Sequence record: ON529852.1
DNA: 64,000 nt
Reading direction: 5' to 3' (one strand)
A program made the position numbers and the translations under genes. Of this stretch, positions 9,001-54,383 are shown in pieces. The notes beneath the pieces are model-generated. The model made no database searches. It was not told where the DNA came from and was given only the letters and a program-made list of their open reading frames with translations. Each line of letters starts with the position of its first letter. Within the stretch, counting starts at the first letter, position 1.

Positions 9001-9050
9001 CACTCGTGCGCTTCGCGCCCTCGTGACTGGCTTCGCCAGCCCTCCTTCGG
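9001..9050 (+). repeat. Dispersed double-hairpin element, copy 1
   Basis: CACTCGT-GCGC(TTC)GCGC-CCTCGTGA-CTGGC(TTC)GCCAG. Confidence 0.85.
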
Positions 9051-9078
9051 AACTCCCTGCGGTCGCTACTGCGTGAAC

Positions 9079-9350
9079 CTGAATCGGTCGTGTCGGTCGA
9101 AACGGTCAAGGGTTGGTAGGGCTGAATCGGTTGTGTCGGTCAAGACGGTCAAGGGTTGGTAGGGCTGGATCGGTCAAGGGTTGGCAGGGCTGGATCGGTC
9201 AGGGGTTGGCACGGCTGGATCGGGCATAAGCGATCAAGGACGGGCATGGCTGGATCGGTCAAGGCCTGGCACTCGAACGTGTTCGAGCCGGCTGGATCGG
9301 ACATCCTCGTTCAAGGCCTGGCACTCGAACGTGGTCGAGCCGGTTGGATC
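9079..9350 (+). repeat. Degenerate tandem array of CTG(G/A)ATCGG...TCAAGG units
   Basis: About 8 units of roughly 25-52 bp with pairwise duplications. Confidence 0.85.
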
Positions 9351-9445
9351 GTAGCCTCGCCCAGCAGCGTTTCAGCACCACCGTCTGGTCGGCTCCACAG
9401 CACTCGGACCTCCACGACGGGACGGCCGAACCGAGTCCAGGGCGA

Positions 9446-9501
9446 CCGGAGGTTGGCTGGCGAAGCCAGTCACGACGGAACGCCGCAGGCGTTCAGGAGT
9501 G
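9446..9501 (-). repeat. Dispersed double-hairpin element, inverted copy
   Basis: Minus strand reads CACTCCT-GAACGCC(TGC)GGCGTTC-CGTCGTGA-CTGGC(TTC)GCCAG-CCAACCTCCGG. Confidence 0.8.
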
Positions 9502-9825
9502 GAAGCGAGCGATGACATTAGGATTTGTCACCGTGCCCTTACAATCTGTCTCTGTCATTTTTCACGGCGGTGGTTGACAGCACCACCGGCAGTCCGTAGA
9601 CAACCTGGGCCGGGAGCGTTCTGCTCAGTCCGTGACCGGCTCTGGAAGAGAAGAGCGGCCGGCGCCTCCCGTACAGAGGATGCTGGTCGCTCCGATCTCA
9701 CCCCTGGCAGGCTCGGACTTTCCTGAACTTTCCTGAAAACTATCCCAACATTCCGAAGGGTCCCGCAGGACCACCGCCGTGTTGCATGTGGGACCACCGT
9801 CCGCATCGCTGCGCCAGGGCGGCTT

Positions 9826-9876
9826 CACTCGTGGGCTTCGCCCCCTCGTGACCGGCTCCGCCGGCCGCACCTCCGG
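9826..9876 (+). repeat. Dispersed double-hairpin element
   Basis: CACTCGT-GGGC(TTC)GCCC-CCTCGTGA-CCGGC(TCC)GCCGG-CCGCACCTCCGG. Confidence 0.85.
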
Positions 9877-9977
9877 TCTCCTGGTTCCGACAAGGCCTGG
9901 CACGGCTGAAGCGCAGCATCGGCTGCAACGTCAACACGGTGGTCCGTCAAGGCCCGGCACGGCCGTGTATTGCTTAG

Positions 9978-10057
9978 ACTTCCCTGAAATCTATCCCAAC
10001 AAATCGCAACACCCGAGCCGGTCAAACCGATTTTCAACCGACTCGGGCTCACGCCGG
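9978..10057 (+). repeat. Direct repeat block A (partner at 10980-11059)
   Basis: ACTTCCCT..TATCCCAA plus a 30-bp identical segment CGATTTTCAACCGACTCGGGCTCACGCCGG. Confidence 0.85.
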
Positions 10058-10059
10058 AC

Positions 10060-10896
10060 CTATCCTGCCTTGGCGCGGGCGATCAGCCGCGAGATGTCCG
10101 CCGGCCCCTGCCCCAGGTGCTCGCCCAGGGCGTCCCGGAAGGCTTCGCGCCAGGAGCGGTTTCGGCGGTATCCGGGGATCGCGTAGAAGGTGCGGATCGC
10201 CGTCATGATCGTATGCTCGTCGGCGTCCTCGGGCAGCCCGTAGACGATCTCGCTGATGATGGCGGGGCTCGGCGCGATGATGATCTCGGGATCGGCGCCC
10301 GGCGCGACGTAGCGGTGGTGGATGGTGGTGAACTCGCGGTGGTTCGGATGGATCGCGATACGATCGGTCGCCTGCCCGGCCTCGGTGCGTCGCCGGATCA
10401 CCTCGGCCAGCATCAGCCCGACCTCGTCCTGGGTGAAGCGGGATTCGCTGCCGCTGGCGCCGTGGTGGTGATGCGGCGTCAGGGGTTTGAAGTGGACGAC
10501 CTCGTCGTCCTCGTCGAGCCAGTCCACGCCGAGCAGGTCCGCGCCGGTCGAGCCGGCCCCGCGCACGGTGGTGTGCTGATAGACCGGCCGCAGCCGCAGT
10601 TCCGCCCGGACGCTGACGACGTCTGACAGGTCGAAGCGCCGGAACATCGGGTACTTGCCGCCGGCGTGGTCCTGCTTCTCCATGCGGTCGGCGGTGCGCA
10701 CGATGGCCTCGCCGATATAGCGGGCCATCTGGGCGGTGCCCAACGGCAGGCTGATCCGGGCGCCGTGGTCGATCTCCAGCGTATGGAGGGTGGCGTCGGG
10801 ATCGTAGCCGGGGCGCTTTTCGAGGATGCGCACGGTCATGCTGGCGCCGTGCGTGCCGGAGAAGTGCATCTCCTCCAGGGTCGTGGTCTTCTTCAT
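10060..10896 (-). CDS. Hypothetical protein
   Basis: Promoter TTGACA-17-CATGGT upstream; SD-like GAGA; flanked by direct repeats. Confidence 0.7.
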   Translation of the reverse strand: MKKTTTLEEMHFSGTHGASMTVRILEKRPGYDPDATLHTLEIDHGARISLPLGTAQMARYIGEAIVRTADRMEKQDHAGGKYPMFRRFDLSDVVSVRAELRLRPVYQHTTVRGAGSTGADLLGVDWLDEDDEVVHFKPLTPHHHHGASGSESRFTQDEVGLMLAEVIRRRTEAGQATDRIAIHPNHREFTTIHHRYVAPGADPEIIIAPSPAIISEIVYGLPEDADEHTIMTAIRTFYAIPGYRRNRSWREAFRDALGEHLGQGPADISRLIARAKAG

Positions 10897-10979
10897 GGTG
10901 GTCTCTCATCACAGGCTCTAGGCCCGAGCCGACCATGATGGGCGCCGCCGTTGCTGTCAATCCGCGACAGGTTTCCTGA

Positions 10980-11059
10980 ACTTCCCTAAGCCGTATCCCA
11001 AACCGCAGGAATGGCCGGCGCATCCAAATCGATTTTCAACCGACTCGGGCTCACGCCGG
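10980..11059 (+). repeat. Direct repeat block B
   Basis: Both sub-motifs offset exactly 1002 bp from block A. Confidence 0.85.
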
Positions 11060-11071
11060 CCTTGTCTCGGG

Positions 11072-11374
11072 TTAAGCCTCGGGCGCTGCCGAGCCTTCGG
11101 GGATCGTCGAGCCGCCGTTCAGGACCGCGTCGAACTGGTCGATCAGGTCCCAGATCGGCTTCATCTCGCCGTCGATCTCGACCTCGTCCAGGTTCCAGTC
11201 CGAGGCGATGCGGGCAAGCTGCCGGGCGACGCGGACCGCTTCGAGCGCGTCGAGCAGACGCTGGTAGTCGTGATCGTCCAGGATCAGGTCCTGGTCGTCG
11301 GGGCGGACGCCGATCAGGCGGGTGCGGATGAAGCCGGCGAGGATGTCGGCCTGGGTCGGGGGTGCTGAGGTCAT
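11072..11374 (-). CDS. Hypothetical protein, probably leaderless
   Basis: TTGACC-17-CATAGA then 6 nt to ATG; real start MTSAPP rather than the ORF-track extension. Confidence 0.65.
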   Translation of the reverse strand: MTSAPPTQADILAGFIRTRLIGVRPDDQDLILDDHDYQRLLDALEAVRVARQLARIASDWNLDEVEIDGEMKPIWDLIDQFDAVLNGGSTIPEGSAAPEA

Positions 11375-11645
11375 TGACACTCTATGTTGGGTATCTTGAC
11401 CGGGGTCAAGGGGATCGCCGCCCGCCCCGATGCATCGGGGCGGGCGCGCAACCTGGTCAACCAGCAAACCCAGGCGGGCGCACCACAGGGGCGCCTCGAT
11501 CTCGCGCTCACCGAAGAGCGCCACGGCCGCCGCAGCTAGGAACGGGACTGCGCGGACGGACCTGGACATTGCCGTCGATCCTGACAAAGGTCAAGCGAAA
11601 TGTCCGTATGTCCACAGGCGCGTGGGCGCGGTGGTCCGGGCAAGC

Positions 11646-11781
11646 AAAAACCCGCCGGCGAGGGACCGGCGGGTTCTCAGGAGCGCTTCTGTTCAGGGAA
11701 GCCGTGCTCGTGAAGAGCACCACGATCGCCTATGCCGGGTATGGGTGTCTGAAACAGGAGTCGCTGCCCGGCGCGACCGGA
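11646..11781 (-). ncRNA. Candidate sRNA F (~135 nt)
   Basis: TTGACA-16-CATTGT promoter (11787-11814), three hairpins, terminator with U-tract, no ATG-initiated ORF. Confidence 0.6.
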
Positions 11782-11828
11782 CCTCGACAATGCCATACTG
11801 GCAGTGTGTGTCAATGGGGACGACATAG

Positions 11829-11941
11829 AAAAAGACCCGCCGGCGAACCGACGGGTCTGGATCGATCAAGATGCTGGGACCTGTTAAAGGTCCACTTGCT
11901 CGGAAGCCGAAGCCCCGGACGACACAGGATACGCGTGCCTT
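11829..11941 (-). ncRNA. Candidate sRNA G (~115 nt)
   Basis: TTGACA-17-CATAGA promoter (11948-11976), hairpins, UUCG terminator with G-U pair and U-tract. Confidence 0.6.
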
Positions 11942-12017
11942 GATCCCTCTATGGGCGAACCCGGAAGGTGTGTCAAGAATCCAGGCGCCGAGATTCCTCC
12001 CGAGGGCGGGCGCCGCG

Positions 12018-12311
12018 TCAGTCGCGGGCCGCCATGGTCTCGTTCCACAGGTAGCCCGCCGGGCGCGGGACCCCGAGGGAGTCCACGAACGGGCGGAACG
12101 GGTAGCCGTTGTTCAGGACGTGCGCGGTCCAGTCGCTCATGCGCGGGATGCGGGCGCGGTTCCGGTGCAGCCAGCACAGGGCGTTGTGCTCCCAGATGTA
12201 GGGGGCTCGGACCCCGTCCCATGTCCCCGACCGGGGATAGAGCGAGGAGGCGAGCATGTCGGCCATGACATAGCCGGCGATGGCGAACTCGTGGTCGTCC
12301 GACGCGGACAT
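12018..12311 (-). CDS. Hypothetical protein
   Basis: ATG overlaps upstream TGA. Confidence 0.55.
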   Translation of the reverse strand: MSASDDHEFAIAGYVMADMLASSLYPRSGTWDGVRAPYIWEHNALCWLHRNRARIPRMSDWTAHVLNNGYPFRPFVDSLGVPRPAGYLWNETMAARD

Positions 12312-13024
12312 CAGGCCTCGCGCCGCTCGGGCACGCCGAACACCGCGTCCGGGTATTGGTCGTGGTTGTAGTTCTCGGCCGCGTCGAAGCCCTGCTCCTT
12401 GGCGATCGCCAGGGCCTCGTCGGCGCTGCTGGCGCGGATCGTCCACTGGTCGCGGCTGGTCCAGGTCACGTCGATGTCGTAGAGGCCTTCGCCTTCCGGC
12501 TCAGGTTCCGGCGTCGGGTCGGGCACGGTGATCGTTACGGCGGTGGTCTCGGCCGCCTGGCCCTGGACCGTTTCCCGAATGGTGACGACGCCTTCGTCGG
12601 TCGCCGAGAGGACTTCGACACGGTGACCCTGGAGCGCGCTCAGGCGCCCTTCTTCTCGGGCCGCCGCGATGACCCGGTTGAGATAGTAGCGCGACACCCC
12701 GTCCATGAAGACCTTGAACTCGGGTTCGAGCAGGACGCGGCGGATGAAGGCTTCATCGGTCACATAGGCGCCGATGTTCGATCGCAGGAAGCGGTGGCGG
12801 AAGTCCGGCAGCGTCTCGGGCGCGATCGCGATCAGATCATGCGCGACCAACTCGGACCCCTCGCCCCGCAGGGCGAACTCGACCTGGGCGTTGCGGGGTA
12901 GGTCGGTCAGACCGGCTTCGGCGTCCGGAGTGACGCGCACCGTCCTCACCGTGGGTTCGCGCTGCGCGATGAACCAGCGGCCGTTGAACTGGAAGAGGCC
13001 TCCGCGATTAGGGCGCTCGGTCAT
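12311..13024 (-). CDS. Protein with N-terminal cold-shock-like OB domain
   Basis: GGLFQFNGRWFIAQ..LPRNAQVEFAL..VAHDL; paralogous to 13041-13247. Confidence 0.6.
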   Translation of the reverse strand: MTERPNRGGLFQFNGRWFIAQREPTVRTVRVTPDAEAGLTDLPRNAQVEFALRGEGSELVAHDLIAIAPETLPDFRHRFLRSNIGAYVTDEAFIRRVLLEPEFKVFMDGVSRYYLNRVIAAAREEGRLSALQGHRVEVLSATDEGVVTIRETVQGQAAETTAVTITVPDPTPEPEPEGEGLYDIDVTWTSRDQWTIRASSADEALAIAKEQGFDAAENYNHDQYPDAVFGVPERREA

Positions 13025-13040
13025 ATGAAGAAACCTTCCA

Positions 13041-13247
13041 TCAGGGGTAGACCTGCTTGACGTCGGCTGCACGGTCGCCGCCGGGGCACACAGGCGCCAG
13101 TCGATAGGTGACAAAGTCGCCGGGCGCGAAGACCTTGTCGTCCACACCGCCCTCAATGGGAAGCCAATCCTCATAGCCCGAGCCCTGGGTGATCAGGAAG
13201 GCGTTCGGACCTGCGCGGTGCAGGATTCCTTGAAGACGTTCGGTCAT
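13041..13247 (-). CDS. Single cold-shock-like OB-fold protein
   Basis: QGIL..FLIT..DWLPI..FAPGDFVTYRL..GDRAADV aligns by eye with the CSD pattern. Confidence 0.6.
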   Translation of the reverse strand: MTERLQGILHRAGPNAFLITQGSGYEDWLPIEGGVDDKVFAPGDFVTYRLAPVCPGGDRAADVKQVYP

Positions 13248-14323
13248 GCTGCGGCCTCGATCTCAACCGCGAAGAGGTGGCCGTCGGCTGCGCGCTCCAG
13301 GCGATAGGTGACCGCTCCCATGGTGTCCGGGAAGCTGACGTCGCCCGCCACGGCGATCCAGTTCTGGTAGTTGGACTCCTGGGTCATCACGAAGACCTGT
13401 CCGGCGGAGCGGATCAGGATGCCGCGCTTGCTCTCCGGGCTCGACGTCTCGGCCTGGTCACGCGGCCGCACGGTGACGACCCGCTCACACCCATAGATGA
13501 AGCGCGTGCGGAACTGCACCCGCGTGCCGTTCGGGAATTCGGTCGTGGCCGATTGGATCGGGATCAGCCGTGCCTTGCCTTCGATCGTAGCGACGAACCG
13601 CCGGTCACCCACATGCATGAAGAAGCCGTTCTCCATCTCTGGCGCAGCGCCGTCGGCCTGGCCGCAGGCGTCATAGGTGCTGTTCGGCAGGGGCTTTCTC
13701 GGCGCGCAGGGCCGGATGGCGGTCGCGTAGCGCTGTCCGGATTTCCCCTCGATCACCGCGTAGGAGACACGTTCGTGCCGACGCAAGCCGAGTTCCTGGC
13801 CTGCGTTCAGCCGGATCGCGTCGCTGCCGTCCTCGGGATAGATCACGACCCATGAATGCAGCATGCCCGGCGTGTCCGTGGGTTCCTTCTGCACCCCAAC
13901 GATGCCGGTGAACCGGGCGGGCTCCAGCACCGTCTCGGGCGTCACGCCAGAAATGAAGAACTCGCCGCGTTCCTGCACCTCGAACAGGTAATCGAGGCGC
14001 TTGCGCTCCTCGGGCGTTCCGTAGGATCGGCCCTGACTGCACCAGGCGATCATGCCGGCCCATTCGATGAAGTTGACCACGGCCTGGGTGCGGGGCGTGC
14101 CGTTGTTCATCCGGGCGCCCAGCGCGAGCCCCATCAGTTCCCGCACCGCCAGTTGGCAGAACGCGCCCTCCGAGAGGCACCCCTTCAAGCCCAACTCCAG
14201 CGCGCGCACGATGCCGTCGCGCACCGACAGCGAAGCGCGCGACCGGAAGTAGTCGGCCTTCATCATGTCGTCGTGCAGATACTGGATCAGGGCGGCGTGC
14301 TGCTCGCGCGTCTTCTGGGTCAT
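13244..14323 (-). CDS. Protein with three tandem cold-shock-like OB domains
   Basis: Three repeats ending ERVSYAV..YATAI, TRVQFRT..VVTV and AVTYRL..FAVEI. Confidence 0.6.
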   Translation of the reverse strand: MTQKTREQHAALIQYLHDDMMKADYFRSRASLSVRDGIVRALELGLKGCLSEGAFCQLAVRELMGLALGARMNNGTPRTQAVVNFIEWAGMIAWCSQGRSYGTPEERKRLDYLFEVQERGEFFISGVTPETVLEPARFTGIVGVQKEPTDTPGMLHSWVVIYPEDGSDAIRLNAGQELGLRRHERVSYAVIEGKSGQRYATAIRPCAPRKPLPNSTYDACGQADGAAPEMENGFFMHVGDRRFVATIEGKARLIPIQSATTEFPNGTRVQFRTRFIYGCERVVTVRPRDQAETSSPESKRGILIRSAGQVFVMTQESNYQNWIAVAGDVSFPDTMGAVTYRLERAADGHLFAVEIEAAA

Positions 14324-14421
14324 CGGGGCTCCTCTTGTCTGTCAACGAACGCCGTAGCAGGCGCCGTCAGGATATGCAACAGCGATTGACAGGAACGGCG
14401 GCACACGCTTATGGTCACGCC

Positions 14422-15159
14422 ATGATCCTGACCGACCTCGCCCAGCATAACCAGAAGCGGCTGAAGAAGCACGACGTCATGTCGATCGCCCGCTCGGTGA
14501 AGAAGCATCTCTCGCGCCTGACGTCCGTGGGCTACACCGCCGGCGCCGTCTCGGAAGGCGAGCGCGGCATCGTCAAGGTCACCACGCCGCAGGGCCGCCG
14601 CTTCGAAATCGCCGTGCGCGAGATTTCCTGCGACGAGGAGATCATGCAGGCTCAGGCCTATTGCGCCGCGCTCGACGATCTCGACCCCAAGAACCTGCCC
14701 CCGGTCTCCGGCCCTGACCCCCTGGGCGACATCCAGACGCTTGCCGCCGAAGCGCGCGGCTGCCCGATCAAGACCTGGGTCTCTGACCCCAAGCCTGCGG
14801 TGATCACGGGCAAGGCGTCTCGCGTTCTGGAGCGCCGGAGCAGCCTGGCTGGACTCAACATCGACGGCGAGTACGTCTATCGCAACTACGCGGTCAACTA
14901 TGACGGCCGGACCTGGGACGACCTGTCGCCGAGCGAGCGCCTGTCGTGGGATGATCAGGCGGCGCTGCTCGTCGGCCGCCTCGCCCGAAAGAAGGCCCCG
15001 GAGCCCGTCGCGGCGGTCAAGACGCCCGAGCCGGTCACCGGCCGCGACCTCTACATGACGATGATCGACAACTCCGGCGTCCACTGCAACCGCTTCCCCG
15101 CCTGGAGCGAACTGGACGAGGCTGCCCAGGCGGACTGGAATCGAAAGGCTCAGAACTGA
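14422..15159 (+). CDS. Hypothetical protein, probably leaderless
   Basis: TTGACA (14386) and TATGGT (14410), then 6 nt to ATG. Confidence 0.65.
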   Translation: MILTDLAQHNQKRLKKHDVMSIARSVKKHLSRLTSVGYTAGAVSEGERGIVKVTTPQGRRFEIAVREISCDEEIMQAQAYCAALDDLDPKNLPPVSGPDPLGDIQTLAAEARGCPIKTWVSDPKPAVITGKASRVLERRSSLAGLNIDGEYVYRNYAVNYDGRTWDDLSPSERLSWDDQAALLVGRLARKKAPEPVAAVKTPEPVTGRDLYMTMIDNSGVHCNRFPAWSELDEAAQADWNRKAQN

Positions 15160-15959
15160 TGCACTGGGTCCTCCAAGAGAACATGTTCGGCGAACTCGCC
15201 TACGCCGAGTTCTGCCGCACGCTGGGCCGGCTCGGCCTGCCCTATTCGGTCCACCGGGTCGTCCCCTTCATCGGGACCTTCCTGGACGAACCACAGATCG
15301 AAACGAACAACGCCATCTGCATGGGCTCCTACTCGATGCGCTACAAGGCCGCCGAGATGGGGTGGAACCCTGGCGTGTTCGATCTGGAGCCGTTCGACTT
15401 CCCCGTCCAGCACGCCCACTGGGGCGCCAACATGCTGAACGCGGCGTCTCGCGTCCTGCCGCTGCGCGAGGTCGACCTGGGCGAGGCGCGCGCCTTCATC
15501 CGCCCGAGCCGCGACACCAAGGCCTTCCCGGCGAAGGTCTATGACCCGTTCGAGTTCCGCGACTGGCAGACCAGGGTCGAGAAGCTGGGCGACATGCCTC
15601 AGGAACTGCTGGACCGGCACACCCTGGTCCAGGTCAGTCCCGTGCGGGAAATCTATGAGGAATACCGCTTCTGGGTGATCCGGGGTGAGATCGTCTGCGC
15701 CTCGCTCTACAAGCGCGGCGACCGGGCGCTCCATGACGCCGACGTGCCGCTGGCCTACCACGAGTACGTCCGGGCGATGATCGACATCTGGCAGCCGCAC
15801 GAGGCCTTCGTGATCGACGTGGCGAACGTGCCCGACGACGGCGACGGCTGGCGCGGGATCAAGATCATCGAGATCAACTCGATCAACTCGGCGGGCTTCT
15901 ATGCGGCGAACCTGCCGAAGCTGGCGATGGCGTTCGAAGACGCCTTCAACGAGGCCTGA
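15159..15959 (+). CDS. ATP-grasp domain protein (R2K/DUF4343-like)
   Basis: FIRP..K.F, EYRFWV..GEIV..SLY, FVIDVA and IIEINSINSAGFY motifs. Confidence 0.8.
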   Translation: MHWVLQENMFGELAYAEFCRTLGRLGLPYSVHRVVPFIGTFLDEPQIETNNAICMGSYSMRYKAAEMGWNPGVFDLEPFDFPVQHAHWGANMLNAASRVLPLREVDLGEARAFIRPSRDTKAFPAKVYDPFEFRDWQTRVEKLGDMPQELLDRHTLVQVSPVREIYEEYRFWVIRGEIVCASLYKRGDRALHDADVPLAYHEYVRAMIDIWQPHEAFVIDVANVPDDGDGWRGIKIIEINSINSAGFYAANLPKLAMAFEDAFNEA

Positions 15960-16106
15960 CATGGTCCCTTCCCTGCCCCCTCACCTGCCCGCGCCGAAGC
16001 CATACTGCGCCTATGTGATCAACCATGACGGAGTCTGGTGGATTCACTCGGGGTATGGGACGGCGCGCCCCTTGACGGCGTCCGAGGTCGCGGCTGGCGG
16101 CCTGAC

Positions 16107-16460: not shown

Positions 16461-16620
16461 CGTTCGGCGCCAGACCGCCCATCCCTGGTGATGTGATTCG
16501 CCACATCCGCAGCACCGAGACCACCGGCAAAACCCTATGCGGGCGCGCCATCAGCCGGGTCTACACTGAGCGGTCCGGCTCCCCCGCCACCTGCGCCAAG
16601 TGCATCGGCCTCAGAGACGC

Positions 16621-16872: not shown

Positions 16873-16874
16873 CG

Positions 16875-17551: not shown

Positions 17552-17572
17552 GGACCACCGCCAGGGCGACTT

Positions 17573-17623
17573 CACTCCTGCGCTTCGCGCCGTCGTGCCC
17601 GGCTCCGCCGGCCGCACCTCCGG
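17573..17623 (+). repeat. Dispersed double-hairpin element, followed by three CCCGGCAC units (17691-17800)
   Basis: CACTCCT-GCGC(TTC)GCGC-CGTCGTGC-CCGGC(TCC)GCCGG; preceded by AGGACCACCGCC. Confidence 0.85.
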
Positions 17624-18023
17624 TCGTCACGTAGGAGAGTAGGGCAAGCAGGAGGGTCGGCGAGTAGGTCGAGCAGGCATCGCGATCAGGCCCGGCACGC
17701 CCTATTCGGCGTCCTCGGTCCCAGGACACAGGACACCAGGCCCGGCACACCCTATTCGGCCGCCTCGACCGGATCACTCTCCCCGTTCAAGCCCGGCACG
17801 ACCGTAACGATCTCTCGGCCGGACCGCCTGCACGTCTCCAGCAGCGTCTCCTCCAGTCGACCGGCCCGGTTCCTGAACCGCCACACGATGTCGACCTGGC
17901 AGATGAAGGGCTGGTTGTTCAGGATGCGGTCGGCGCGCGCGCGAGCCGAGTCCATGTCGAACGCCTCCGACAGCGGCTCCAGCCGCTTGACGAAATGCTG
18001 TTCGTGATGACGGCGGGTCCCGA

Positions 18024-18949: not shown

Positions 18950-18979
18950 CGGGGCGTCTCCTCTTCAGTTGAGGATCAT

Positions 18980-27487: not shown

Positions 27488-27562
27488 GCGTCCTGGGTGT
27501 GTTGGACAGCACGTTCAGCTTCTAACTGGAAAGGCCGGGTTCGATTCCTGGAGGACGCGCCA
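27488..27562 (+). tRNA. tRNA-Arg(UCU)
   Basis: Full cloverleaf: GCGTCCT/AGGACGC acceptor, G73, CCA, loop CT-TCT-AA, A20, GGTTCGATTCC. Confidence 0.93.
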
Positions 27563-27601
27563 TCGCTTGACACCACTTGAGGCGCGTGCATCATTCTTTC
27601 T

Positions 27602-27847
27602 ATGAAGAAACACCCTGACCCATGGTGCGGCGTCGGAGCCTTGCGCGCGCTCCACCACCCCTACGCCGCTAAATCGTTTCCAGGCGCCACGTACCTCCGT
27701 ACAGAATTTTGCACGGTATTCGATAAGTGGACCACCGTATATCAGGACGACAAGGGGCAAGAGTGCGTGATGGTTGAGATGTGGCAAGACCCTGAGGGAA
27801 AGACCGGCCGTATGGCGGTCATCAAACCGCGCGGCGTGCTCCACTAA
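27602..27847 (+). CDS. Hypothetical protein, probably leaderless
   Basis: TTGACA at 27567, -10 near 27589-27595, ATG at the predicted +1. Confidence 0.6.
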   Translation: MKKHPDPWCGVGALRALHHPYAAKSFPGATYLRTEFCTVFDKWTTVYQDDKGQECVMVEMWQDPEGKTGRMAVIKPRGVLH

Positions 27848-27848
27848 T

Positions 27849-27899
27849 CACTCCTGCGCTGCGCGCCGTCGTGCCCGGCTCCGCCGGCCGCACCTCCGG
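27849..27899 (+). repeat. Dispersed double-hairpin element
   Basis: CACTCCT-GCGC(TGC)GCGC-CGTCGTGC-CCGGC(TCC)GCCGG. Confidence 0.85.
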
Positions 27900-27922
27900 T
27901 CGATAACGCCCAGAATGACCAC

Positions 27923-28078
27923 GCCCGGCACAGCCGATACGGCTGATCCCGTTCGGGAACATTCGCCCCAAGCCCGGCACAGCCGATACGGCTGATCCCG
28001 TTCGGGAACATTCGCCCCAAGCCCGGCACAGCCGATACGGCTGATCCCGTTCGGGAACATTCGCCCCAAGCCCGGCAC
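27923..28078 (+). repeat. Perfect tandem repeat, 3 x 49 bp plus 9 bp
   Basis: Unit GCCCGGCACAGCCGATACGGCTGATCCCGTTCGGGAACATTCGCCCCAA starts at 27923, 27972, 28021, 28070. Confidence 0.95.
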
Positions 28079-28265
28079 GGCCGCAGCGTTTTGATCCCGA
28101 ACGGGATCACGCCGATGGTCGCCATATCATCCGCAACGGCCGATACGGGTTGATATGGGCGCCATCAGGGCCGGCGGGCAGTCGAGGCGGATGCATCAGA
28201 TATGACGCACGGGCTACGGCTGTCGGTATGTTTGACACCCATCGCCTGCTGTGTCATGCAGAGGG

Positions 28266-45086: not shown

Positions 45087-45089
45087 GCG

Positions 45090-47191: not shown

Positions 47192-47676
47192 TGCGCCACG
47201 CTCTCATCCGCGACGACCGGGTCGTCAATATCATCCTGTGCGGTCCTGACTTCCAGCCGCCCGAAGGCCTCACGCTTGTTGTGTTGGGTGAAGCCGAAAC
47301 GGCTGCGATCGGCTGGCTCTATGACGGCCAAGGCTTCGCGCCCCCGACCGATGTCGCGCCGGAGCCGCAAACGCCGGACCTGCGCCCGACCAAGGCGCGT
47401 TTCGGCGACCTGTTCACCGATGACGAGCACGCCGCCATGAACCTGATCCGTTGGCAGTGCCGTCAGATGGATGCGGCCGAGCGCGCCATCCCTGGCAATC
47501 CTTTGGTCTACGCCGAGACCTTGTTCATCAAGTTCGACCTGCCGGCTGAGTTCATTGAACTGGACTTGCCCATGGTGGCGCAGGGTCTGGGCCTTCTCGG
47601 CATGTTGGGCGTGTTCGGCGACCGCGCCGAGTCGCGCATTCCCCAGGTCCTGGCGAACGAAGACCCGCCGGCCTAA
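47188..47676 (+). CDS. Putative fibre assembly chaperone
   Basis: ALI.D..VVNI...IGWLYDG..F.PP N-terminus directly after the Gly-rich fibre gene. Confidence 0.55.
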   Translation: MMRHALIRDDRVVNIILCGPDFQPPEGLTLVVLGEAETAAIGWLYDGQGFAPPTDVAPEPQTPDLRPTKARFGDLFTDDEHAAMNLIRWQCRQMDAAERAIPGNPLVYAETLFIKFDLPAEFIELDLPMVAQGLGLLGMLGVFGDRAESRIPQVLANEDPPA

Positions 47677-47861
47677 GTGATCGGCGGATCGACCCATTCG
47701 CCGAACTTGAAGACGCCTGGGCAGGTCTGTCCGTCTTGTCCCTTATGGCGGCGCGGAAATCGTTCGGAGCCGTCTCCTTTATGGCGCCCCTGTCGCGGCA
47801 GGCGTCCGTTCGCGGTCTCTTTACCACAGACGACGCACTGCACGATCAGCCAGGTCGCCAT
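47673..47861 (-). CDS. Small Zn-binding protein
   Basis: CVVCG..H..CPG. Confidence 0.5.
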   Translation of the reverse strand: MATWLIVQCVVCGKETANGRLPRQGRHKGDGSERFPRRHKGQDGQTCPGVFKFGEWVDPPIT

Positions 47862-48300
47862 CAGGCGTCCGGATTGAGCCGCCAGGTGGCGACCGCGCCG
47901 TGACGGGCGCCCACCAGGGTGTTCCTGCGTTCCGCCTTCCTGGCGTTAACCAGCATGCCGAGCATGCCTTGCAGCATCGCCGCGCTGCTGCGGTCGCCCC
48001 AGCGGCGGTGCAGGGCCTCGATGTCTTCCCAGTCGTCGGACAGGATGCCGAGGGCTTCCAGCGCCAGCGGCGGTATGGCGTCCTCGGCCAGACGTCGCGG
48101 CGGGCTCGTCGCCTCCCGCAGCGCCTTCTGGTGTTCGGCCGGCAGGCCGTAGAGCGCGATGAGGCCGTGGCTTAGCATTCGCGCCTGATCGTTCGACAGG
48201 TCAAGCGTGAAGCTGCCCAGGCCGATCTCACAGCGACCGCTGCGATCGATCGATATGCCGCAGTCGCCGTGCGGGCGGAAACGCCCTGTAAATCCAGCGG

Positions 48301-48750
48301 TCATGCCATCTTCCAACGATAGGTCGGCGACCCCGCGCCCGTGGGCTTCGGGTTTTGCTCGATCCGACCTTCCGCCAGCAGGGTGGCGATGGCGCGGTTC
48401 AAGCGCGGGGTCGGAATGCCGGCTTCCCCCATGGAATCGTGGATTTGCAGCGGCGTGCGCCAGAAGCCGCGAATGTGCCGAGCAACCGTCTCGACGTCCT
48501 GCACGGCGACCGACACCAGGCCCATGCGCTCCAGCCATTCCTTGTAGCGCAGGTCGCAGGCAGCCTTGGCCTGATCCACCGTCTTGAACTCGTCGGTGCG
48601 GAAGGGCTGGCTGTTGACGTAGTCGTAGACCGTGACCACCTCGCCGACCTTCTGGATGTCGAACACCGAAGGACCGGCATGACCATCCATGTCCACAGCG
48701 CAGCCATGCGCCTCGTTCTTGTGTTCCGATTGCCAGATCAGCGCGCCCAT
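48301..48750 (-). CDS. Hypothetical protein with possible C-terminal winged helix
   Basis: SD GAGGAGG after promoter 48782. Confidence 0.65.
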   Translation of the reverse strand: MGALIWQSEHKNEAHGCAVDMDGHAGPSVFDIQKVGEVVTVYDYVNSQPFRTDEFKTVDQAKAACDLRYKEWLERMGLVSVAVQDVETVARHIRGFWRTPLQIHDSMGEAGIPTPRLNRAIATLLAEGRIEQNPKPTGAGSPTYRWKMA

Positions 48751-48781
48751 ACGGCCCTCCTCGAATGTCGTTGAGGTGGTT

Positions 48782-48808
48782 GTAAAGGAATGATTTGCGG
48801 CTGTCAAT
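48782..48808 (-). promoter_or_regulatory. Phage-type promoter
   Basis: TTGACA-GCCGCAAATCA-TTCCTTTAC. Confidence 0.8.
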
Positions 48809-49046
48809 CCCACTGGAAGGCGTCCCAGTCGATCGCCAGCCGCGCCGCTTCCTCTTCCGAGATCGGGTGAGGGTCCGAACAGACCCGATAGGGCTCGCCC
48901 TTCAGGGTGACACGGCGGATGTGCCGCCCCTGGTGGCGTTCGTAGGCGCTGCACAGGCAATCGCCGCGAACTTCGTAAACCTCGACCACAATGCCAGGCT
49001 CGATCTTGCGCCGCCGTCGCCGGTTCATCGTCTTAAGGGTCGCCAT
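48804..49046 (-). CDS. Hypothetical protein
   Basis: Operon packing. Confidence 0.5.
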   Translation of the reverse strand: MATLKTMNRRRRRKIEPGIVVEVYEVRGDCLCSAYERHQGRHIRRVTLKGEPYRVCSDPHPISEEEAARLAIDWDAFQWD

Positions 49047-49205
49047 GTCGCGCCTCCAGCTTGGTGTTGAGGTCAGCCCAGGCCTGGGCGACGCGACGGT
49101 CGCGCTCCCGATCGGTAATGCGCCCTTGGTTCCGCAGCAGGTCTGCGTCCTCGATCTTCCAGCGGCAATGGCGCTTCAGTTCCGCCTCCGAGGCGACATA
49201 GGCGC

Positions 49206-49829
49206 TCAATCGTCTAGTCCACGCAACGTGAGTTCCGAGAGTGCGCCGCGCCGCGCCATCGCCGCCCGACAACGGTTCAGGAAGTCGGGGTAGGCGGCGA
49301 TCTTGTCCCGAGCGCAGTAGAGGATGCGCAGGTAGGTGACGATCTCGTTGTTGGACATCCGCGTCGGATCGCGCGCGGCGTAGACCTCCGACAGATAGAC
49401 CCAGTTCTCGGCGTGGGCATGGTCGCTCAGATCGCGCATCAACGCCGTCATCAGCGACGTCGACAGGGGCGCGGGGGTCTGGGCGATCGCCCAGCAGCGG
49501 TCCGCCGCCGACTGGGTGTGGAGGCAGGCGACCGTACCGCCGCTCGGATCGTATTCCCCGCCGTGACGGACATGGAATATGTCCCAGATGGCCCGGCCGA
49601 TCTGCTCAATCTGCGCCTGCTCGTGCGTCAGTTGAGGCTCGGGAGGGCGGACCCAATCGGGACCTTGCGGATAGGCTTTTTCGAAATCGGTCCAGGCCTC
49701 GGCCGCTTCACGTCGGGCGTCGTCATGGGACAGATAGCCCAGGCGACGCCGCCTCGCGGCGGTTTCCGCCCGGTATTCGGTCACAGCGCGGGCGTCGTCC
49801 TCGGACGTCTCGGCGTCGAAGTAGGGCAT
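49206..49829 (-). CDS. Hypothetical protein
   Basis: SD GGAGG. Confidence 0.6.
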   Translation of the reverse strand: MPYFDAETSEDDARAVTEYRAETAARRRRLGYLSHDDARREAAEAWTDFEKAYPQGPDWVRPPEPQLTHEQAQIEQIGRAIWDIFHVRHGGEYDPSGGTVACLHTQSAADRCWAIAQTPAPLSTSLMTALMRDLSDHAHAENWVYLSEVYAARDPTRMSNNEIVTYLRILYCARDKIAAYPDFLNRCRAAMARRGALSELTLRGLDD

Positions 49830-50079
49830 AGGGCCTCCGGGTTAGGCGTTGGCGGCGGACAGGAAATAGCGCTGGGTTTGGTCCAGCCAGAGATGAAACG
49901 GCCGTACCGCCGCCTTTACGCCGCCACGCGGGGCCGTCTGGTCGAACAGGGCTTGTGCGCGGCCGACCTGGTCGGCGGTGACGCCGAGGCGTCGCATCTC
50001 AGTCTCAACAGTCGTCATGGGGCTCCAAGTACGCAGGAGGGGAAGAAGGCGGGCCGCCGGAGCGGCCCGCCGTTGTGGA

Positions 50080-51381
50080 TTAGGCGCTTGCCTTGTCCAG
50101 GGTCGTCGAGGTGGCATCGCGCGGCTGGAACTTGCCGTCCTCGGCGCGGGTCATGTTGGCGAGGCGCTCGGCCGGCGAGACCTTGGGCGCCGGCATGCGC
50201 AGGTCGGCGCGGGGGAAGGTCAGGCTGCTCGGGACATAGCCCATGATCGCCAGGTCCTTCTGGGTCGGGCTGGTGATGCCCCGGATCGTCGTCAGCGACT
50301 TGTCGACCGCAAAGGCGTTCCAGGCGCGGGCGGCGGCGCCGAAGGCGACGGACGGATGCACGATGTTGCGGCTGCGCGCGCGCTCCAGCGCCTCCCACTC
50401 ACGCAGCGTCAGGCGCGGGTCGCCCTTCTCCAGTCCGGCGCCGGTTTCAAGCGCCTCCAGGAACTCGTCCACCTTCGAACTGAACAGGCCCTTGCTGTCG
50501 CCCAGCGCCAGCACGGCGGCGAGCGGACCCTTGGGGAAGCGAATCTTGCGCTTGGCGACCTTGTCGATGACGCCGTCCAGGACGGGGTTGGCTTCGATGA
50601 ACTCCAGCAGGGCGACGCGGCCCAGCGGGCCGGTCAGCGACAGGTTGGCCCCGTAGTTGTGCACGAAGCGTCCGGCGGTCGCCAGCAGGCTGGAGTTCTC
50701 CTTGCCCGCCAAGGCGACGACGTCGCCGGCCGAACGGGTCTTGCCGTTGTCGATCGTGGTGAAGACTTCATCAGCCGCGTCGTAGGCGATCAACATCTTC
50801 AGCGTGACGCCGGCGCGGACGATGGCGTGCAGGCGGTGCTGACCGTCCAGCAGGCGGTTGGTGAGGCTCACCACGATGGTGGCGCCGTTCTGTTGCCAGG
50901 ACCCGGCGATCATATCTTGCGCGTACTTCCGCACCAACGCTTCCGAGAGCGGGCGGTTGTGGGTGTTGGCTTTCAGCAGGGCTTCGGCCTCGTCGGGGCC
51001 GATCATTTCGAACTGGATACGGGGCTGCATGGGCGCGGGTTGTCCTTTCGTGGCAGGGGCGGACGAGACCAGGGTCGCGGCCGGAGCAGATGAAGGTGAA
51101 GGGATGGACTTGGGGACCACCTTGAGCGCACGCGGTTGAGCGCCTCGGGTGGAGAAGAGCGGCGTGACGTCGCCGGCGGTTGCGGCTCCGGTCGCAGAGG
51201 CGGTCGTTTTACCGGCCTTGCGGTCGGCGCGCACGCGTTCGTAAATATCGGGAGCCTTGGCTTTCACCATCTGCTGCACGCCTGTGCGGTCGACGTTGAA
51301 ATGACGCCCAAGTTGGGCGAAGGAGTAGTTGCCCGTCGCGAACATCTTGATCGCTTCGTCATGGTTATACTTGGCTTGCAA
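50080..51381 (-). CDS. HTH plus ParB/Srx-like (DGQHR) domain protein
   Basis: NRPLS..V.KYA.DM..G.W..NG.TI..LLDGQHRL.AIV; N-terminal HTH; TTG start with SD AGGAG. Confidence 0.8.
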   Translation of the reverse strand: MQAKYNHDEAIKMFATGNYSFAQLGRHFNVDRTGVQQMVKAKAPDIYERVRADRKAGKTTASATGAATAGDVTPLFSTRGAQPRALKVVPKSIPSPSSAPAATLVSSAPATKGQPAPMQPRIQFEMIGPDEAEALLKANTHNRPLSEALVRKYAQDMIAGSWQQNGATIVVSLTNRLLDGQHRLHAIVRAGVTLKMLIAYDAADEVFTTIDNGKTRSAGDVVALAGKENSSLLATAGRFVHNYGANLSLTGPLGRVALLEFIEANPVLDGVIDKVAKRKIRFPKGPLAAVLALGDSKGLFSSKVDEFLEALETGAGLEKGDPRLTLREWEALERARSRNIVHPSVAFGAAARAWNAFAVDKSLTTIRGITSPTQKDLAIMGYVPSSLTFPRADLRMPAPKVSPAERLANMTRAEDGKFQPRDATSTTLDKASA

Positions 51382-51382
51382 T

Positions 51383-51733
51383 TCAGAACTCCTGGGTCTT
51401 AGGGGGCTTGGAGACGCAGACGCGCCGGGGCTTGACGGGGGTTACGTGGTCGGGGTGGCGTTTCAGCGCCCGGCCGGGATGGCCCAGACGTCGGAGCGTG
51501 GCGTGATTGGCGCGCGAGGAGACCCGTCCGACCGGGAAGGCGCCTTTGACCGGGACCACCTTGCCGTAGCAATCGGGGTTCAAAGGGTCGTCGCCATACC
51601 ACAGGCCCGTGAAAAGGTAGTCCCCCGGCACACGGATCAGGGAGGTCGGACGCTCGACGTCCGCCTTGGACAGCGACAAACGCACCCACAGGCGGTCGCT
51701 GCGATCTCTCGGGCGGCGGTAGAGCGCGCTCAT
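51383..51733 (-). CDS. Hypothetical protein
   Basis: Operon packing. Confidence 0.5.
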   Translation of the reverse strand: MSALYRRPRDRSDRLWVRLSLSKADVERPTSLIRVPGDYLFTGLWYGDDPLNPDCYGKVVPVKGAFPVGRVSSRANHATLRRLGHPGRALKRHPDHVTPVKPRRVCVSKPPKTQEF

Positions 51734-52083
51734 GCCGGGGCGTCCAGGATGGCCGAGAGCGATTCGATCTCGGCGGTCGTCAGGTGCGAAGGCGGGTCCA
51801 TGTCATCCGCAAGCTTCCGGAGCCGACGCCAGGCCGCCTTGCGACCCTGCTCGGCGTCGAAGGCGTCTCGGCTCGGCCAGAGTTGGGCGCGATGGCCGAA
51901 GTCGGAATCCTGGCGCCCCGAGAAGTCATAGCGGTCCTGGGACCAGGTTGCCGATTGCACCGTCAACCAGGCGCGACCGATCTTCACGACCTTCGCCTCG
52001 GAGGTCTCGATCCCGCGCCGGCCCGGATAGGCGATGATCACCGCTTGGCCTTCGGTCCAGGTGCTTTTATCGAACGTCGGCAT
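51730..52083 (-). CDS. Hypothetical protein
   Basis: SD GGAGG after promoter 52113. Confidence 0.65.
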   Translation of the reverse strand: MPTFDKSTWTEGQAVIIAYPGRRGIETSEAKVVKIGRAWLTVQSATWSQDRYDFSGRQDSDFGHRAQLWPSRDAFDAEQGRKAAWRRLRKLADDMDPPSHLTTAEIESLSAILDAPA

Positions 52084-52112
52084 CAGCCCTCCCTCTCGTC
52101 TGAAGAGATGAC

Positions 52113-52139
52113 GTAAAGGAATGGTTTCCGGCTGTCAAC
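52113..52139 (-). promoter_or_regulatory. Phage-type promoter
   Basis: TTGACA-GCCGGAAACCA-TTCCTTTAC. Confidence 0.8.
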
Positions 52140-52288
52140 AGTCTCGCGCTGAATATTCGCAACGTCGTAGCCGCTCGCATCGAGCAACGCGTAGGCGATG
52201 TCTCCAGCCCTTTCAAGCGGCGCCGCGCCGCTATGGACGAGACCCGCCGCAATGGCGTTGAGTTGACGCCGGGTGGCGACGGGGGCCG

Positions 52289-52636
52289 TCATGCGTGACC
52301 TCGCGTGCGAACGGCCTCGCAGACCTCGCTGGCGGGGTCGCCGTCGTTGTTGCGCCGTCGTTCGCTGGCAGGGTGTTTGCGCCATCCTGACGGCTCGCCC
52401 TGGAAGTCCCGCTCGGACCATTCGATCAGGGCGAGCAGGGCGCGGCGGAAGTCCGCATAGCAGTAGCGGTCGAGATAGCCCGAACGGTCGCCCACCTCCC
52501 CGATGTGCAGGGTCCAGTGGAAGAGCAGCGGCTTGACCCCGCACCACATGGCGTCCGGCATGATCAGCGCGGCGGCGTATCCCTGGCTTTCCAGCCAGGT
52601 CAGGAACTCGGCTTCAGCGGCGTCCGGCTTAAGCAT
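52289..52636 (-). CDS. Conserved-type phage protein
   Basis: W.G...LLFHW.L..G...Y.DRYCY..EP.GW.KH. Confidence 0.6.
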   Translation of the reverse strand: MLKPDAAEAEFLTWLESQGYAAALIMPDAMWCGVKPLLFHWTLHIGEVGDRSGYLDRYCYADFRRALLALIEWSERDFQGEPSGWRKHPASERRRNNDGDPASEVCEAVRTRGHA

Positions 52637-52976
52637 CGGGAGAACAGGCTGCGGCGCAGCGCAGCCCCATCGCCCAGCCGGCGGCGTTCGGGCGGAACCG
52701 GGCGATCGGCGAGAGAAAGTCGACGGATTCGCTGAAGTGCGGATCGACCACGCCGCGATTGCGCGCCACCACCGCCTCAAAGCAATCCGCCTGGAACAAC
52801 ATGATCTTGCGACCCTCGTAGTTGCTGGCGTCCGGATACTGGACCTCGACGAGCACGAAGGCGCCGACGCGCAACTGTTGGATCAGGCGGAAGTTCGTTG
52901 CGACGGGATTTCCCGGCGGCGGCGCCGCCGGGCGATCGAAGGTGGAGCCGCTCAACCGGTAGCCGACCCCCATCAC
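52629..52976 (-). CDS. Conserved-type phage protein
   Basis: VQYPDASNYEGRKIMLF..DPHF..SPIARFRP..GW. Confidence 0.7.
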   Translation of the reverse strand: MMGVGYRLSGSTFDRPAAPPPGNPVATNFRLIQQLRVGAFVLVEVQYPDASNYEGRKIMLFQADCFEAVVARNRGVVDPHFSESVDFLSPIARFRPNAAGWAMGLRCAAACSPDA

Positions 52977-53302
52977 GACGCCCTTTCGCTCAGGTAGACG
53001 ACATTGGAGCCGTCGATCGCGCCCAGCCCCTGGTCGGCGTTGAGCGCACGTTCGACGCGGCGCTGCGCGTCCAGGCGGAACTGATCGCGATCCGCCATCG
53101 TCACCAGCGGAAGCGTCAAAGGCCCGCCCGTCAAGGCCAGGCCGTGGGACCGCGCGGCATCGGCCGCGCCCGTCCGGGTGCCGAAAGCGCCGTAGTGCGG
53201 CTGCGCCTTACCGGGGAAGAGCGTGCTTTCACTGACCAGGCGGTATTGGTGGGGATGGCTGCGGTAGCCGGTAGACTCTTCTATGATCCAGGCCTTGCGC
53301 AT
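52973..53302 (-). CDS. Hypothetical protein
   Basis: Operon packing. Confidence 0.5.
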   Translation of the reverse strand: MRKAWIIEESTGYRSHPHQYRLVSESTLFPGKAQPHYGAFGTRTGAADAARSHGLALTGGPLTLPLVTMADRDQFRLDAQRRVERALNADQGLGAIDGSNVVYLSERAS

Positions 53303-53303
53303 C

Positions 53304-53765
53304 TCAGACCGCCTTGCTCTTGGGCCAGTGCCGCAGCACACCGGCGGCGATCTGCTGCCCGCGCGCGGTGAGCGTGGTCTTGCCCGTCAGCAGCCCCAGG
53401 CGGATGAGATGGTCGAAGATCGGTTGCAGAGACCCGACTTCGGCCGGCATCGGGCGCTCCTGATGCAGACGGATCAGCACCCGGCGATCGTCTTCGTCAA
53501 GGGCGCTGTAGATTTGTTGACGTTCGCTGGCGTCGACTTCGCCCGTCTCGATCAACGTGGAGTCGATCTCCAACGCGCGCGCCGTCAGCATGTCGGCGAT
53601 CTCCATCGCGGTATGCATGGCGCTGTTGCGATCCTGCGTGCGGAACGCGGCGACAAGGCGATGGCCCATCTGCGCAGCCGCCCAGGCCGAGATCACCTTG
53701 GGAGAGCCTACAGGCTCCGCCGCCATCACGGTGTCCAGGGGAACTTCGATGTCGAACTCTTCCAC
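53304..53765 (-). CDS. Hypothetical protein
   Basis: GTG start with SD AGGAGG after promoter 53796. Confidence 0.6.
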   Translation of the reverse strand: MEEFDIEVPLDTVMAAEPVGSPKVISAWAAAQMGHRLVAAFRTQDRNSAMHTAMEIADMLTARALEIDSTLIETGEVDASERQQIYSALDEDDRRVLIRLHQERPMPAEVGSLQPIFDHLIRLGLLTGKTTLTARGQQIAAGVLRHWPKSKAV

Positions 53766-53795
53766 GCAGCCTCCTATGTGTCGTCGAACCACCGC

Positions 53796-53822
53796 GTAAA
53801 GGAATGAATCCTGACTGTCAAC
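53796..53822 (-). promoter_or_regulatory. Phage-type promoter
   Basis: TTGACA-GTCAGGATTCA-TTCCTTTAC. Confidence 0.8.
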
Positions 53823-53969
53823 CACCGCCAGTTCTGCTGACGTAGCTTGTCCTTTCACTGGGCGTCCTGTTTTCAGCGCGTGCTGAAACCACCGTGGGGA
53901 GTGAAACCGGCCGTCTTGCGCCATCGGCTGGCCGAGATATGGTGTCGGACGGCCATGGGAGGCAAGCGC

Positions 53970-54269
53970 ATGACTTACATGACGATCGGGCAGGTGGGCG
54001 CGATGGCGCGAGGTCGGGGCATGGTTTTCAGCCGGACCGCCGACACCTATCAATTCCGGCTGCGGTATCGGGACCCGACCGCCTCTGATGCGGACGGCCG
54101 TTCAGAATGGATCACGGCGGACCTTCAAGAAATCATCGCGGTGCTGCGAACCATGGAGCCGTTCGAACCGCCTCCGGTCGTCACCATCCCCCGCCAGGCG
54201 AACTTCAGCAACAATCGGGCGTGCAGCGACCTGGAGCCGCGCGACAAGCGCTCGTCCAGCGACTACTAG
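53970..54269 (+). CDS. Hypothetical protein
   Basis: TTGCGC..TATGGT promoter; SD GGAGG. Confidence 0.55.
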   Translation: MTYMTIGQVGAMARGRGMVFSRTADTYQFRLRYRDPTASDADGRSEWITADLQEIIAVLRTMEPFEPPPVVTIPRQANFSNNRACSDLEPRDKRSSSDY

Positions 54270-54333
54270 GACAACGCCTAAGGACAGGATGTCCGCCTAA
54301 GTATACATCACGGGTAAAAAGAGTCCGATGGCT

Positions 54334-54383
54334 CACTCGTGGGCTTCGCCCCCTCGTGACCGGCTGCCGCCGGCCCCCTCCGG
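54334..54383 (+). repeat. Dispersed double-hairpin element
   Basis: CACTCGT-GGGC(TTC)GCCC-CCTCGTGA-CCGGC(TGCC)GCCGG; CCGGCACAGCCG follows at about 54410. Confidence 0.85.

Follow-up and report, generated by a model that had tools for sequence, protein, structure and literature searches.

GNA and GNNA are two documented classes of exceptionally stable DNA mini-hairpins, defined by a G-N-A or G-NN-A loop, a 5'C-G3' closing pair, and a G+C stem, and they are known at the G4 complementary-strand origin, at RSF1010 ssiA, and at the N4 promoters (PMC13037366). Repeats of another kind, the PeSL cassettes of T4-like phages, consist of an early promoter and a terminator-like stem-loop oriented with transcription (PMC2839356, PMC4122927). 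Here, we describe a repeat unit of ∼57 bp with three small hairpins from Brevundimonas phage vB_BpoS-Kabachok, a giant siphophage of the Dolichocephalovirinae with a genome of 356,285 bp. The stretch analyzed, referred to as the window, consists of bases 1 to 64000 of this genome (ON529852.1), and window and record coordinates coincide. The papers on phiCbK-like phages that were searched contain no earlier description of the element. We class it as undescribed so far and as a variation on two known kinds, the mini-hairpin signals of single-stranded DNA (ssDNA) and the intergenic repeat cassettes of phages. Our current hypothesis, to which we assign a probability of roughly 0.4, is that the element is a strand-specific folded-DNA signal.

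To define the element, 43 distinct copies were aligned with two covariance models and then parsed. On the strand that reads CACTC, hairpin 1 begins with a basal helix, TCAC:GTGA, followed by a 2x2 internal loop (TC versus TC), one pair that alternates between G-C and C-G, usually a pyrimidine-pyrimidine mismatch (T.C, C.T, or C.C), and an upper stem of 3 to 7 bp capped by a C-TNC-G loop. The stem of hairpin 2 is CCGGC/GCCGG or one of the variants CTGGC/GCCAG, TCGGC/GCCGA, and CTGCC/GGCAG, and its loop is TNC or TGCC. Hairpin 3, (A/T/G)CC-TYC-GG(T/A/C), has 3 bp and sometimes 4 bp; 30 copies have A-T as the outer pair, 11 have T-A, and one has G-C. The original prediction, made from the letters of the window, had reported six copies, and all six are where it had placed them. 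The parsed alignment also bears out its alternating stems (GCGC or GGGC in stem 1, CCGGC or CTGGC in stem 2), the 7-bp stem 1 of the inverted copy, and a single 4-nt loop, TGCC (GGCA on the other strand). Its two-hairpin architecture, however, has to be extended. A third hairpin of 3 to 4 bp sits in what had been written as '..CCTYCGG', and hairpin 1 had been drawn too short, since the basal helix, the 2x2 internal loop, and the covarying G-C/C-G pair (the two 'S' positions of the prediction) also belong to it. The core pattern has 5 matches versus 0.08 expected by chance.

The fold is under selection. In the final alignment of the 43 copies, 96.3% of the alignment cells are paired versus 85.7% in shuffles, and two-sided compensatory changes are found at 11 of the 17 base pairs, a count reached by none of 500 shuffles. 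As a control, the partner columns were slid, which left at most 4 pairs with two-sided changes. An earlier pair count, from which hairpin 3 was left out, agrees with the final covariation count. The check that had been suggested with the original prediction, a covariance model across related phages, thus upholds its compensatory stem changes. The basal helix is mostly invariant, and in rare copies it is compensated (CCAC/GTGG, ACAC/GTGT, TCGC/GCGC, and, in phage CcrPW, TTGC/GCAA). In the CcrPW copy, which lies antisense within an open reading frame (ORF), the change from TCAC/GTGA to TTGC/GCAA comprises two compensatory pairs and has amino-acid changes as its cost. Across the 43 copies, helices 1 to 3 contain zero G-U type (one-sided) pairs. 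Strict Watson-Crick pairing is a requirement of a DNA hairpin or cruciform, and its presence here supports a fold at the DNA level.

The loops are invariant at their first and last positions and free at the center. All 129 loops of the 43 copies have T first and C last and are closed by a C-G pair (C-TNC-G or C-TNNC-G), and on the other strand the same loops read C-GNA-G or C-GNNA-G. Loop 1 is TTC, TCC, TGC, or TAC, loop 2 is TGCC, TCC, TTC, or TGC, and loop 3 is TCC or TTC; all four bases occur at the central position, not purines alone. Together with their closing pairs, the loops of this GNA strand include GCGAAGC, GCGGAGC, GCGNNAGC, and CCGAAGG, and the mini-hairpin motif (GCGNAGC or GCGNNAGC) is found there at 129/129 loops. 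The GGCA loop, which had stood as a lone exception in the original prediction, is accounted for by the 4-nt GNNA class. On the CACTC strand, pyrimidines face each other in the internal loop and at the mismatch of hairpin 1, a property that the T.C and C.T variants both keep, and on the GNA strand these positions are G.A-type purine pairs. Folding predictions favor the GNA strand as the more stable one in 27 of 27 copies, with RNA and DNA parameters alike, and in all six window copies when these were folded separately. A genome-wide census of perfect hairpins in Kabachok revealed no general GNA loop bias and no strand switch. The two strands of the element are therefore asymmetric, each copy carrying a strand-specific hairpin set, and the GNA strand looks like the strand that matters, as had been proposed from the window. 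Homologs do not freely lose the GNA loop or the stem pairing, a loss that the original prediction had named as grounds for abandoning the idea.

The covariance-model search located 10 copies in the Kabachok genome, starting at 8999, 9437 (inverted), 9824, 17571, 27847, 54332, 65438, 89690, 113790, and 156733. Nine of these are on the + strand; the last four lie outside the window, and the 157 to 356 kb portion of the genome contains none. The strand is just as constant in CcrColossus (6/6 copies) and in CcrPW (5/5 copies, plus one decayed orthologue), and four uncultivated viral contigs have two to three copies each, with 3/3 or 2/2 on one strand. The +/-/+ trio at the left of the Kabachok series is also present in Marchewka and Papperlapapp. 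For Kabachok alone, a polarity of 9/10 corresponds to a two-sided p of ∼0.02. Agreement with the first copy of each genome is 18/19, roughly p = 4e-5, a figure inflated by orthology between genomes. By blastn, the element was found only in seven Brevundimonas giant phages (Kabachok and six sisters) and in two Colossusvirus phages. Loose pattern scans of viral, genome, and metagenome collections gave mostly chance matches, from which at least seven contigs with true copies remained after filtering (L140, L175, L244, L268, L341, L342, and L367). Two contigs from genome collections have bona fide copies, one on JBEBYB010000018.1, a contig of a Phenylobacterium metagenome-assembled genome (L175 7678–7739), and another at L244 5933–5993. 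Among the matches listed, the element appears rare outside this phage group. Gill et al. put the packaging start of CcrColossus just downstream of terL (PMC3556154), a map that places the elements in the last-packaged part of the unit genome and, by extension, presumably does so in Kabachok.

Polarity is constant along the genome, and orientation is independent of gene direction, with about half of the copies antisense to their neighbors. In Kabachok, the copies at 17571, 27847, 54332, and 156733 lie 0 to 63 nt after co-oriented genes, and those at 8999, 9824, 65438, 89690, and 113790 are antisense to the genes beside them. Among the latter, three run into ORFs: the overlap is with a stop codon at 113790 and with the 3' end of an ORF at 65438, and the copy at 89690 lies within one. 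CcrColossus has three co-oriented and three antisense copies. Two of the antisense ones supply the final 20 codons of gp291 and gp390, where the reverse complement of the element head gives a TGA stop that overlaps the next ATG. The fold is still kept in the antisense copies inside ORFs. One CcrColossus copy (272173) and one Gurke copy (L384 20002) lie in divergent promoter regions, and a gene is not consistently present downstream of the copies. The original prediction held that three copies follow the last gene of a plus-strand island, and this stands for the 17571 copy and, if an unannotated 81-aa ORF is counted, for the 27847 copy; it applies only loosely at 54332, where another + gene follows.

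Placement next to gene ends raises the alternative of an RNA-level boundary of transcription units, for example, a factor-dependent or weak terminator, a 3'-exonuclease block, or a processing site that would work in either orientation, as REPs do. Copies lie 0 to 22 nt past co-oriented stop codons at 17571, 27847, and 156733 and at CcrColossus 163469 and 271541; they overlap stop codons of anti-oriented genes at 113790 and in gp291 and gp390, and two sit at convergent junctions. Predicted folding energies are about -20 to -24 kcal/mol for the RNA of either strand. Several copies have a promoter-like TTGACA site after them, read with the local transcription and located on either strand, so that the element is often at the boundary between transcription units. 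However, a function that is free of orientation predicts a random strand, and 9/10, 6/6, and 5/5 copies were observed on one. An RNA boundary would also leave unexplained why loop positions 1 and 3 are invariant around a free middle, and why no G-U pair has appeared despite many compensatory changes. It sits poorly with the in-ORF copies, where ribosomes would melt the hairpins, with the copies in divergent promoter regions, and with the presence of a copy at only 2 of the ∼6 convergent junctions in the window. In addition, Rfam has no match to the element: at the gathering score, the sole match in the window is a tRNA-Arg at 27488–27562, and no family was matched at the elements in 8900–10000 with E up to 1.

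Intrinsic terminators resemble the element as G+C-rich hairpins just past stop codons, but reading of the flanks and a scan of the window for terminator-like sites revealed no T run after the copies on either strand, and the conserved unpaired sequence and fixed loops of the element are not part of a terminator. Canonical T-tract terminators are separate features, such as that at 11858–11833 on the minus strand, and the annotated CcrColossus terminators never coincide with the element, one of them lying 100 nt downstream of a copy in the same direction. An orientation that tracks the genome strand rather than transcription and the missing T-tract argue against a simple RNA terminator, a point on which the original prediction had hinged. 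Taken together, the pattern points to a folded-ssDNA signal rather than to an ordinary RNA terminator, and we consider a role as an RNA boundary somewhat unlikely. Bacterial REP/BIME sequences, which are likewise imperfect palindromes repeated at the ends of genes, whichever way these run, differ in having hundreds of copies, a GTAG head, and a RAYT transposase; the element has an (A)TCAC head, 5 to 10 copies per genome, and no annotated transposase. An anti-Shine-Dalgarno role or a hidden ORF was also considered for the CCTCC tail (GGAGG on the other strand) and was rejected, as there is no start codon at a usable distance.

The original prediction had drawn an analogy to the hairpin promoters of phage N4, and in favor of an N4-type or other ssDNA-active promoter, the GGA and GAA loops on 5-bp stems match the N4 early-promoter mini-hairpins. 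Like the element, N4 early promoters have a stem of 5 to 7 bp and a 3-nt GNA-type loop on one strand of a double-stranded DNA (dsDNA) phage. They consist of one hairpin, not three, and they call for a purine at the loop center, where the element also has C or T. Moreover, in either direction about half of the copies would drive antisense RNA, and the element has no consistent downstream gene. No RNA polymerase is annotated in Kabachok, and no RNA polymerase domain was detected in four scanned proteins of ∼1,070 to 3,020 aa, the largest Kabachok proteins being tail or lectin-like. Papperlapapp_02080 (L385 38323–39288), annotated as 'RNA polymerase', was considered as a partner enzyme and rejected, because it contains only repeated helix-turn-helix (HTH) and sigma-70 region-4-like motifs; without a polymerase domain, it is probably a DNA-binding regulator. 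With no RNA polymerase found, the promoter analogy is unsupported, and we regard it as extremely improbable.

Two other proteins were considered as possible partners. KABACHOK_05240 (321191–322102), annotated as 'DNA primase', is not one, as it matches an ArdC N-terminal domain and a zincin metallopeptidase, with an anti-restriction PHROG. The 1218-aa protein of gene 03250 has weak primase/helicase matches in PHROGs and no match to solved structures. Gene 03250 adjoins a gene for a 224-aa, catalytic-core-only (minimal) tyrosine recombinase, and the pair (173048–177489) is conserved in CcrColossus (gp183/gp182) and CcrPW.

The minimal recombinase, conserved in the group (PMC3556154), bears on the possibility that the element is a recombination module. 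Under this explanation, dispersed 57-bp identities or recombinase sites at cassette borders, akin to PeSLs or, more speculatively, to attC sites, would shuffle the hypervariable early region. Between Kabachok and Papperlapapp, homology breaks off at 17626, where one copy has its 3' edge, and resumes at 27849, the first base of another, where the 81-aa ORF is swapped for a 321-aa multi-HTH gene in Papperlapapp. Homology with Marchewka resumes at 17572, so that both edges of the 17571 copy are homology breakpoints versus sister phages. All copies lie among small, poorly conserved genes, and they are in direct orientation, as in integron attC arrays. On the other hand, intergenic spaces here are short, so that indels sparing a conserved element will frequently end right beside it, and chance is expected to account for part of the border coincidence; of the indel borders in these comparisons, most are away from elements. 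Homologous recombination has no need of covarying stems or fixed loops, two recombinase monomers would not fit on stems this short, and orthologous copies are stable between CcrColossus and CcrPW. PeSLs resemble the element in being conserved intergenic repeats of hyperplastic regions, located at replacement borders and sometimes followed by a promoter (PMC2839356, PMC4122927). The element shares the location at replacement borders (17572, 17626, and 27849), with the short intergenic spaces as a caveat, but unlike a PeSL it lacks a constant promoter component, consists of three covarying hairpins, and is oriented by the genome strand. The border coincidence fits a cassette-border role, and any such role may be a by-product of the repeats and not what they are for; as the explanation of the element, we find recombination rather improbable.

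A related suggestion is that the element is a selfish miniature mobile element, REP/RAYT-like or derived from IS200/IS605, whose spread through an ssDNA intermediate gave the strand bias. Several hairpin-rich 57-bp units on one strand, copies in the 3' ends of ORFs as if inserted, and positions that are not all syntenic between Kabachok and CcrColossus would follow from such an origin. However, the 5' flanks show neither a conserved insertion target nor a target duplication. No HUH/Y1 or RAYT-type transposase is present in the Kabachok annotation, the copy number is low, orthologous sites are kept across sister phages, and the fold is maintained by selection even within coding sequence. This origin is therefore one that we judge very improbable.

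We return to the folded-DNA signal. The constant genome strand, the G..A loops and purine mismatches on the GNA strand, and the strict Watson-Crick pairing argue that the fold is selected in DNA. That it acts in its single-stranded form, and in which process, is inference on our part. When the window minus strand, which is the GNA strand, is unpaired, ∼57 nt could fold into three adjacent mini-hairpins, with the tandem G.A internal loop stiffening hairpin 1. Such occasions could be replication, resection, recombination, or cruciform extrusion under supercoiling. The compact fold would resist nucleases, bind single-stranded DNA-binding protein (SSB) poorly, and be read by a protein, the likeliest readers being an ssi-like factor for priming or replication restart, a nuclease, or an enzyme of recombination. 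The priming, DNA-entry, and nuclease-target roles put forward in the original prediction would be conjectural. The fixed polarity may mirror the direction of a process that runs through the last-packaged half of the genome.

Several observations weigh against a folded-DNA signal. Single-sequence folding energies only modestly beat shuffles (z -0.3 to -2.6), although nearest-neighbor folding models give no bonus for mini-hairpins; the case for selection on structure, which the original prediction had made, is accordingly built on covariation and not on energy. Sister-phage copies are orthologous, so the strand counts are not fully independent. GC skew tracks gene orientation and gives no origin or fork direction. 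Five to ten copies in one part of a 280 to 356 kb genome are too few for general lagging-strand priming, and the phiCbK group is likewise without a recognized primase (PMC3556154), yet has no element copy by blastn. Lastly, most copies are tight against gene ends, some then followed by TTGACA, which is the placement expected of an RNA boundary element.

Among the closest known systems are the complementary-strand origins of G4, St-1, and alpha3 and the ssiA and ssiB sites of RSF1010, which are strand-specific short hairpins in non-coding DNA. They have GCGNAGC, GCGNNAGC, or CCGAAGG mini-hairpins, and G4 also has three hairpins. In RSF1010, two opposed sites lie beside iterons. Comparably, copy A (8999..9057, + strand, 81 bits; bit scores in the window are from covariance model R1) faces copy B (9437–9503, - strand, 51 bits), the only inverted copy, across tandem repeats at 9079–9223 (43 bp in 2.3 copies and 25 bp in 3.1 copies). 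The two belong to a 1.2-kb non-coding region (8860–10059) in which a promoter-like TTGACA-17-TAGACA near 9576–9605 is followed by copy C (9824..9882, + strand, 84 bits), and this layout recalls an iteron origin with paired ssi sites. One specific form of the folded-DNA signal would be a polar mini-hairpin series on the strand whose 3' end is at the last-packaged end of the genome, presumably the first to enter. With this strand exposed, the copies would serve as entry points for a host or phage primase in the style of G4 and RSF1010 or as Chi-like or roadblock sites against exonucleases, with the 9.0 to 9.9 kb trio as an RSF1010-type origin. We hold this form to be unlikely. Known ssi signals are features of ssDNA phages and small plasmids, with one or two per replicon, whereas the element occurs 5 to 10 times over 150 kb of a giant dsDNA phage; the sequence similarity is limited to the loops, and a priming role would be an extrapolation from them.

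The remaining features of the window were annotated copy by copy. Copy A lies ∼90 nt upstream of a promoter-like site of the minus-strand gene 00130 (8911–8883, - strand), and copy B, parsed as 9441..9503, has an upper stem of 7 bp in hairpin 1. Copy C lies 175 nt downstream of the stop codon of the minus-strand gene 00140 and illustrates the full anatomy. Its hairpin 1 (9825..9851, + strand) consists of TCAC:GTGA, a 2x2 TC/TC loop, a G-C pair, a T.C mismatch, and a 4-bp upper stem with C-TTC-G; hairpin 2 (9852..9864, + strand) is CCGGC-TCC-GCCGG, and hairpin 3 (9869..9877, + strand) is ACC-TCC-GGT. The copy at a convergent junction (17571..17629, + strand, 82 bits) starts 20 nt past the stop of the + gene 00260 and lies 120 nt after the stop of the minus gene 00270. 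The next copy (27847..27905, + strand, 78 bits) is at the stop codon of the unannotated + ORF of 81 aa (27602–27847), which has a promoter-like site at 27567–27594 and whose stop codon abuts the element. An equivalent of this ORF is annotated in Marchewka (MARCHEWKA_02110), and Papperlapapp has the 321-aa HTH-repeat gene instead. The copy between the + genes 01050 and 01060 (54332..54389, + strand, 59 bits) has the hairpin 2 loop TGCC. Beyond the window, near-identical promoter-like sites, TTGACA-N11-ATTCCTTTAC, occur at 65370–65437 and 113725–113789 (minus), ahead of genes 01270 and 02280 and 7 to 8 nt past the element.

Other repeats accompany the element. A second repeat family, with the core CCCGGCAC(A/G)GCC, is located after five of the six window copies on the + strand, at 27919–28083 (period 49), 17687–17760 (period 50), 9896–9965, and 54405–54430. 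Past the 27847 copy, three 49-bp units of this family stand in tandem; they are nearly identical, and each contains small inverted repeats. For the core GGCACRGCCG, 6 occurrences were counted versus 1.3 expected, all of them on the + strand, and the family could be protein-binding iterons or further structured units. The motif GGACCACCGCC has 11 occurrences at ≤1 mismatch versus 4.3 expected, with + sites that include 8943, 8979, 9768, 9791, 17552, 25109, and 25439. It precedes the 17571 copy and copies A and C by 9 to 50 nt and is also found directly before the start codon of gene 00430, so that a role in translation initiation or as a flank motif is possible. Just ahead of gene 01060, at 54442–54478, a 17-nt sequence (TTCATGTTGYTTAAGTC) occurs as two direct repeats 20 nt apart.

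If the fold is read in DNA, the element would be the first dispersed, polar mini-hairpin signal family in a giant dsDNA phage. Gill et al. recognized no primase or SSB in phiCbK-like phages (PMC3556154), and the element would then offer a handle on priming, restart, or DNA protection in this group, as well as a natural in vivo test bed for GNA/GNNA mini-hairpins. Even as an RNA or recombination boundary, the element remains a clean family, supported by covariation, whose members mark cassette borders in the hypervariable early region and can be used as an annotation landmark for the phage group.

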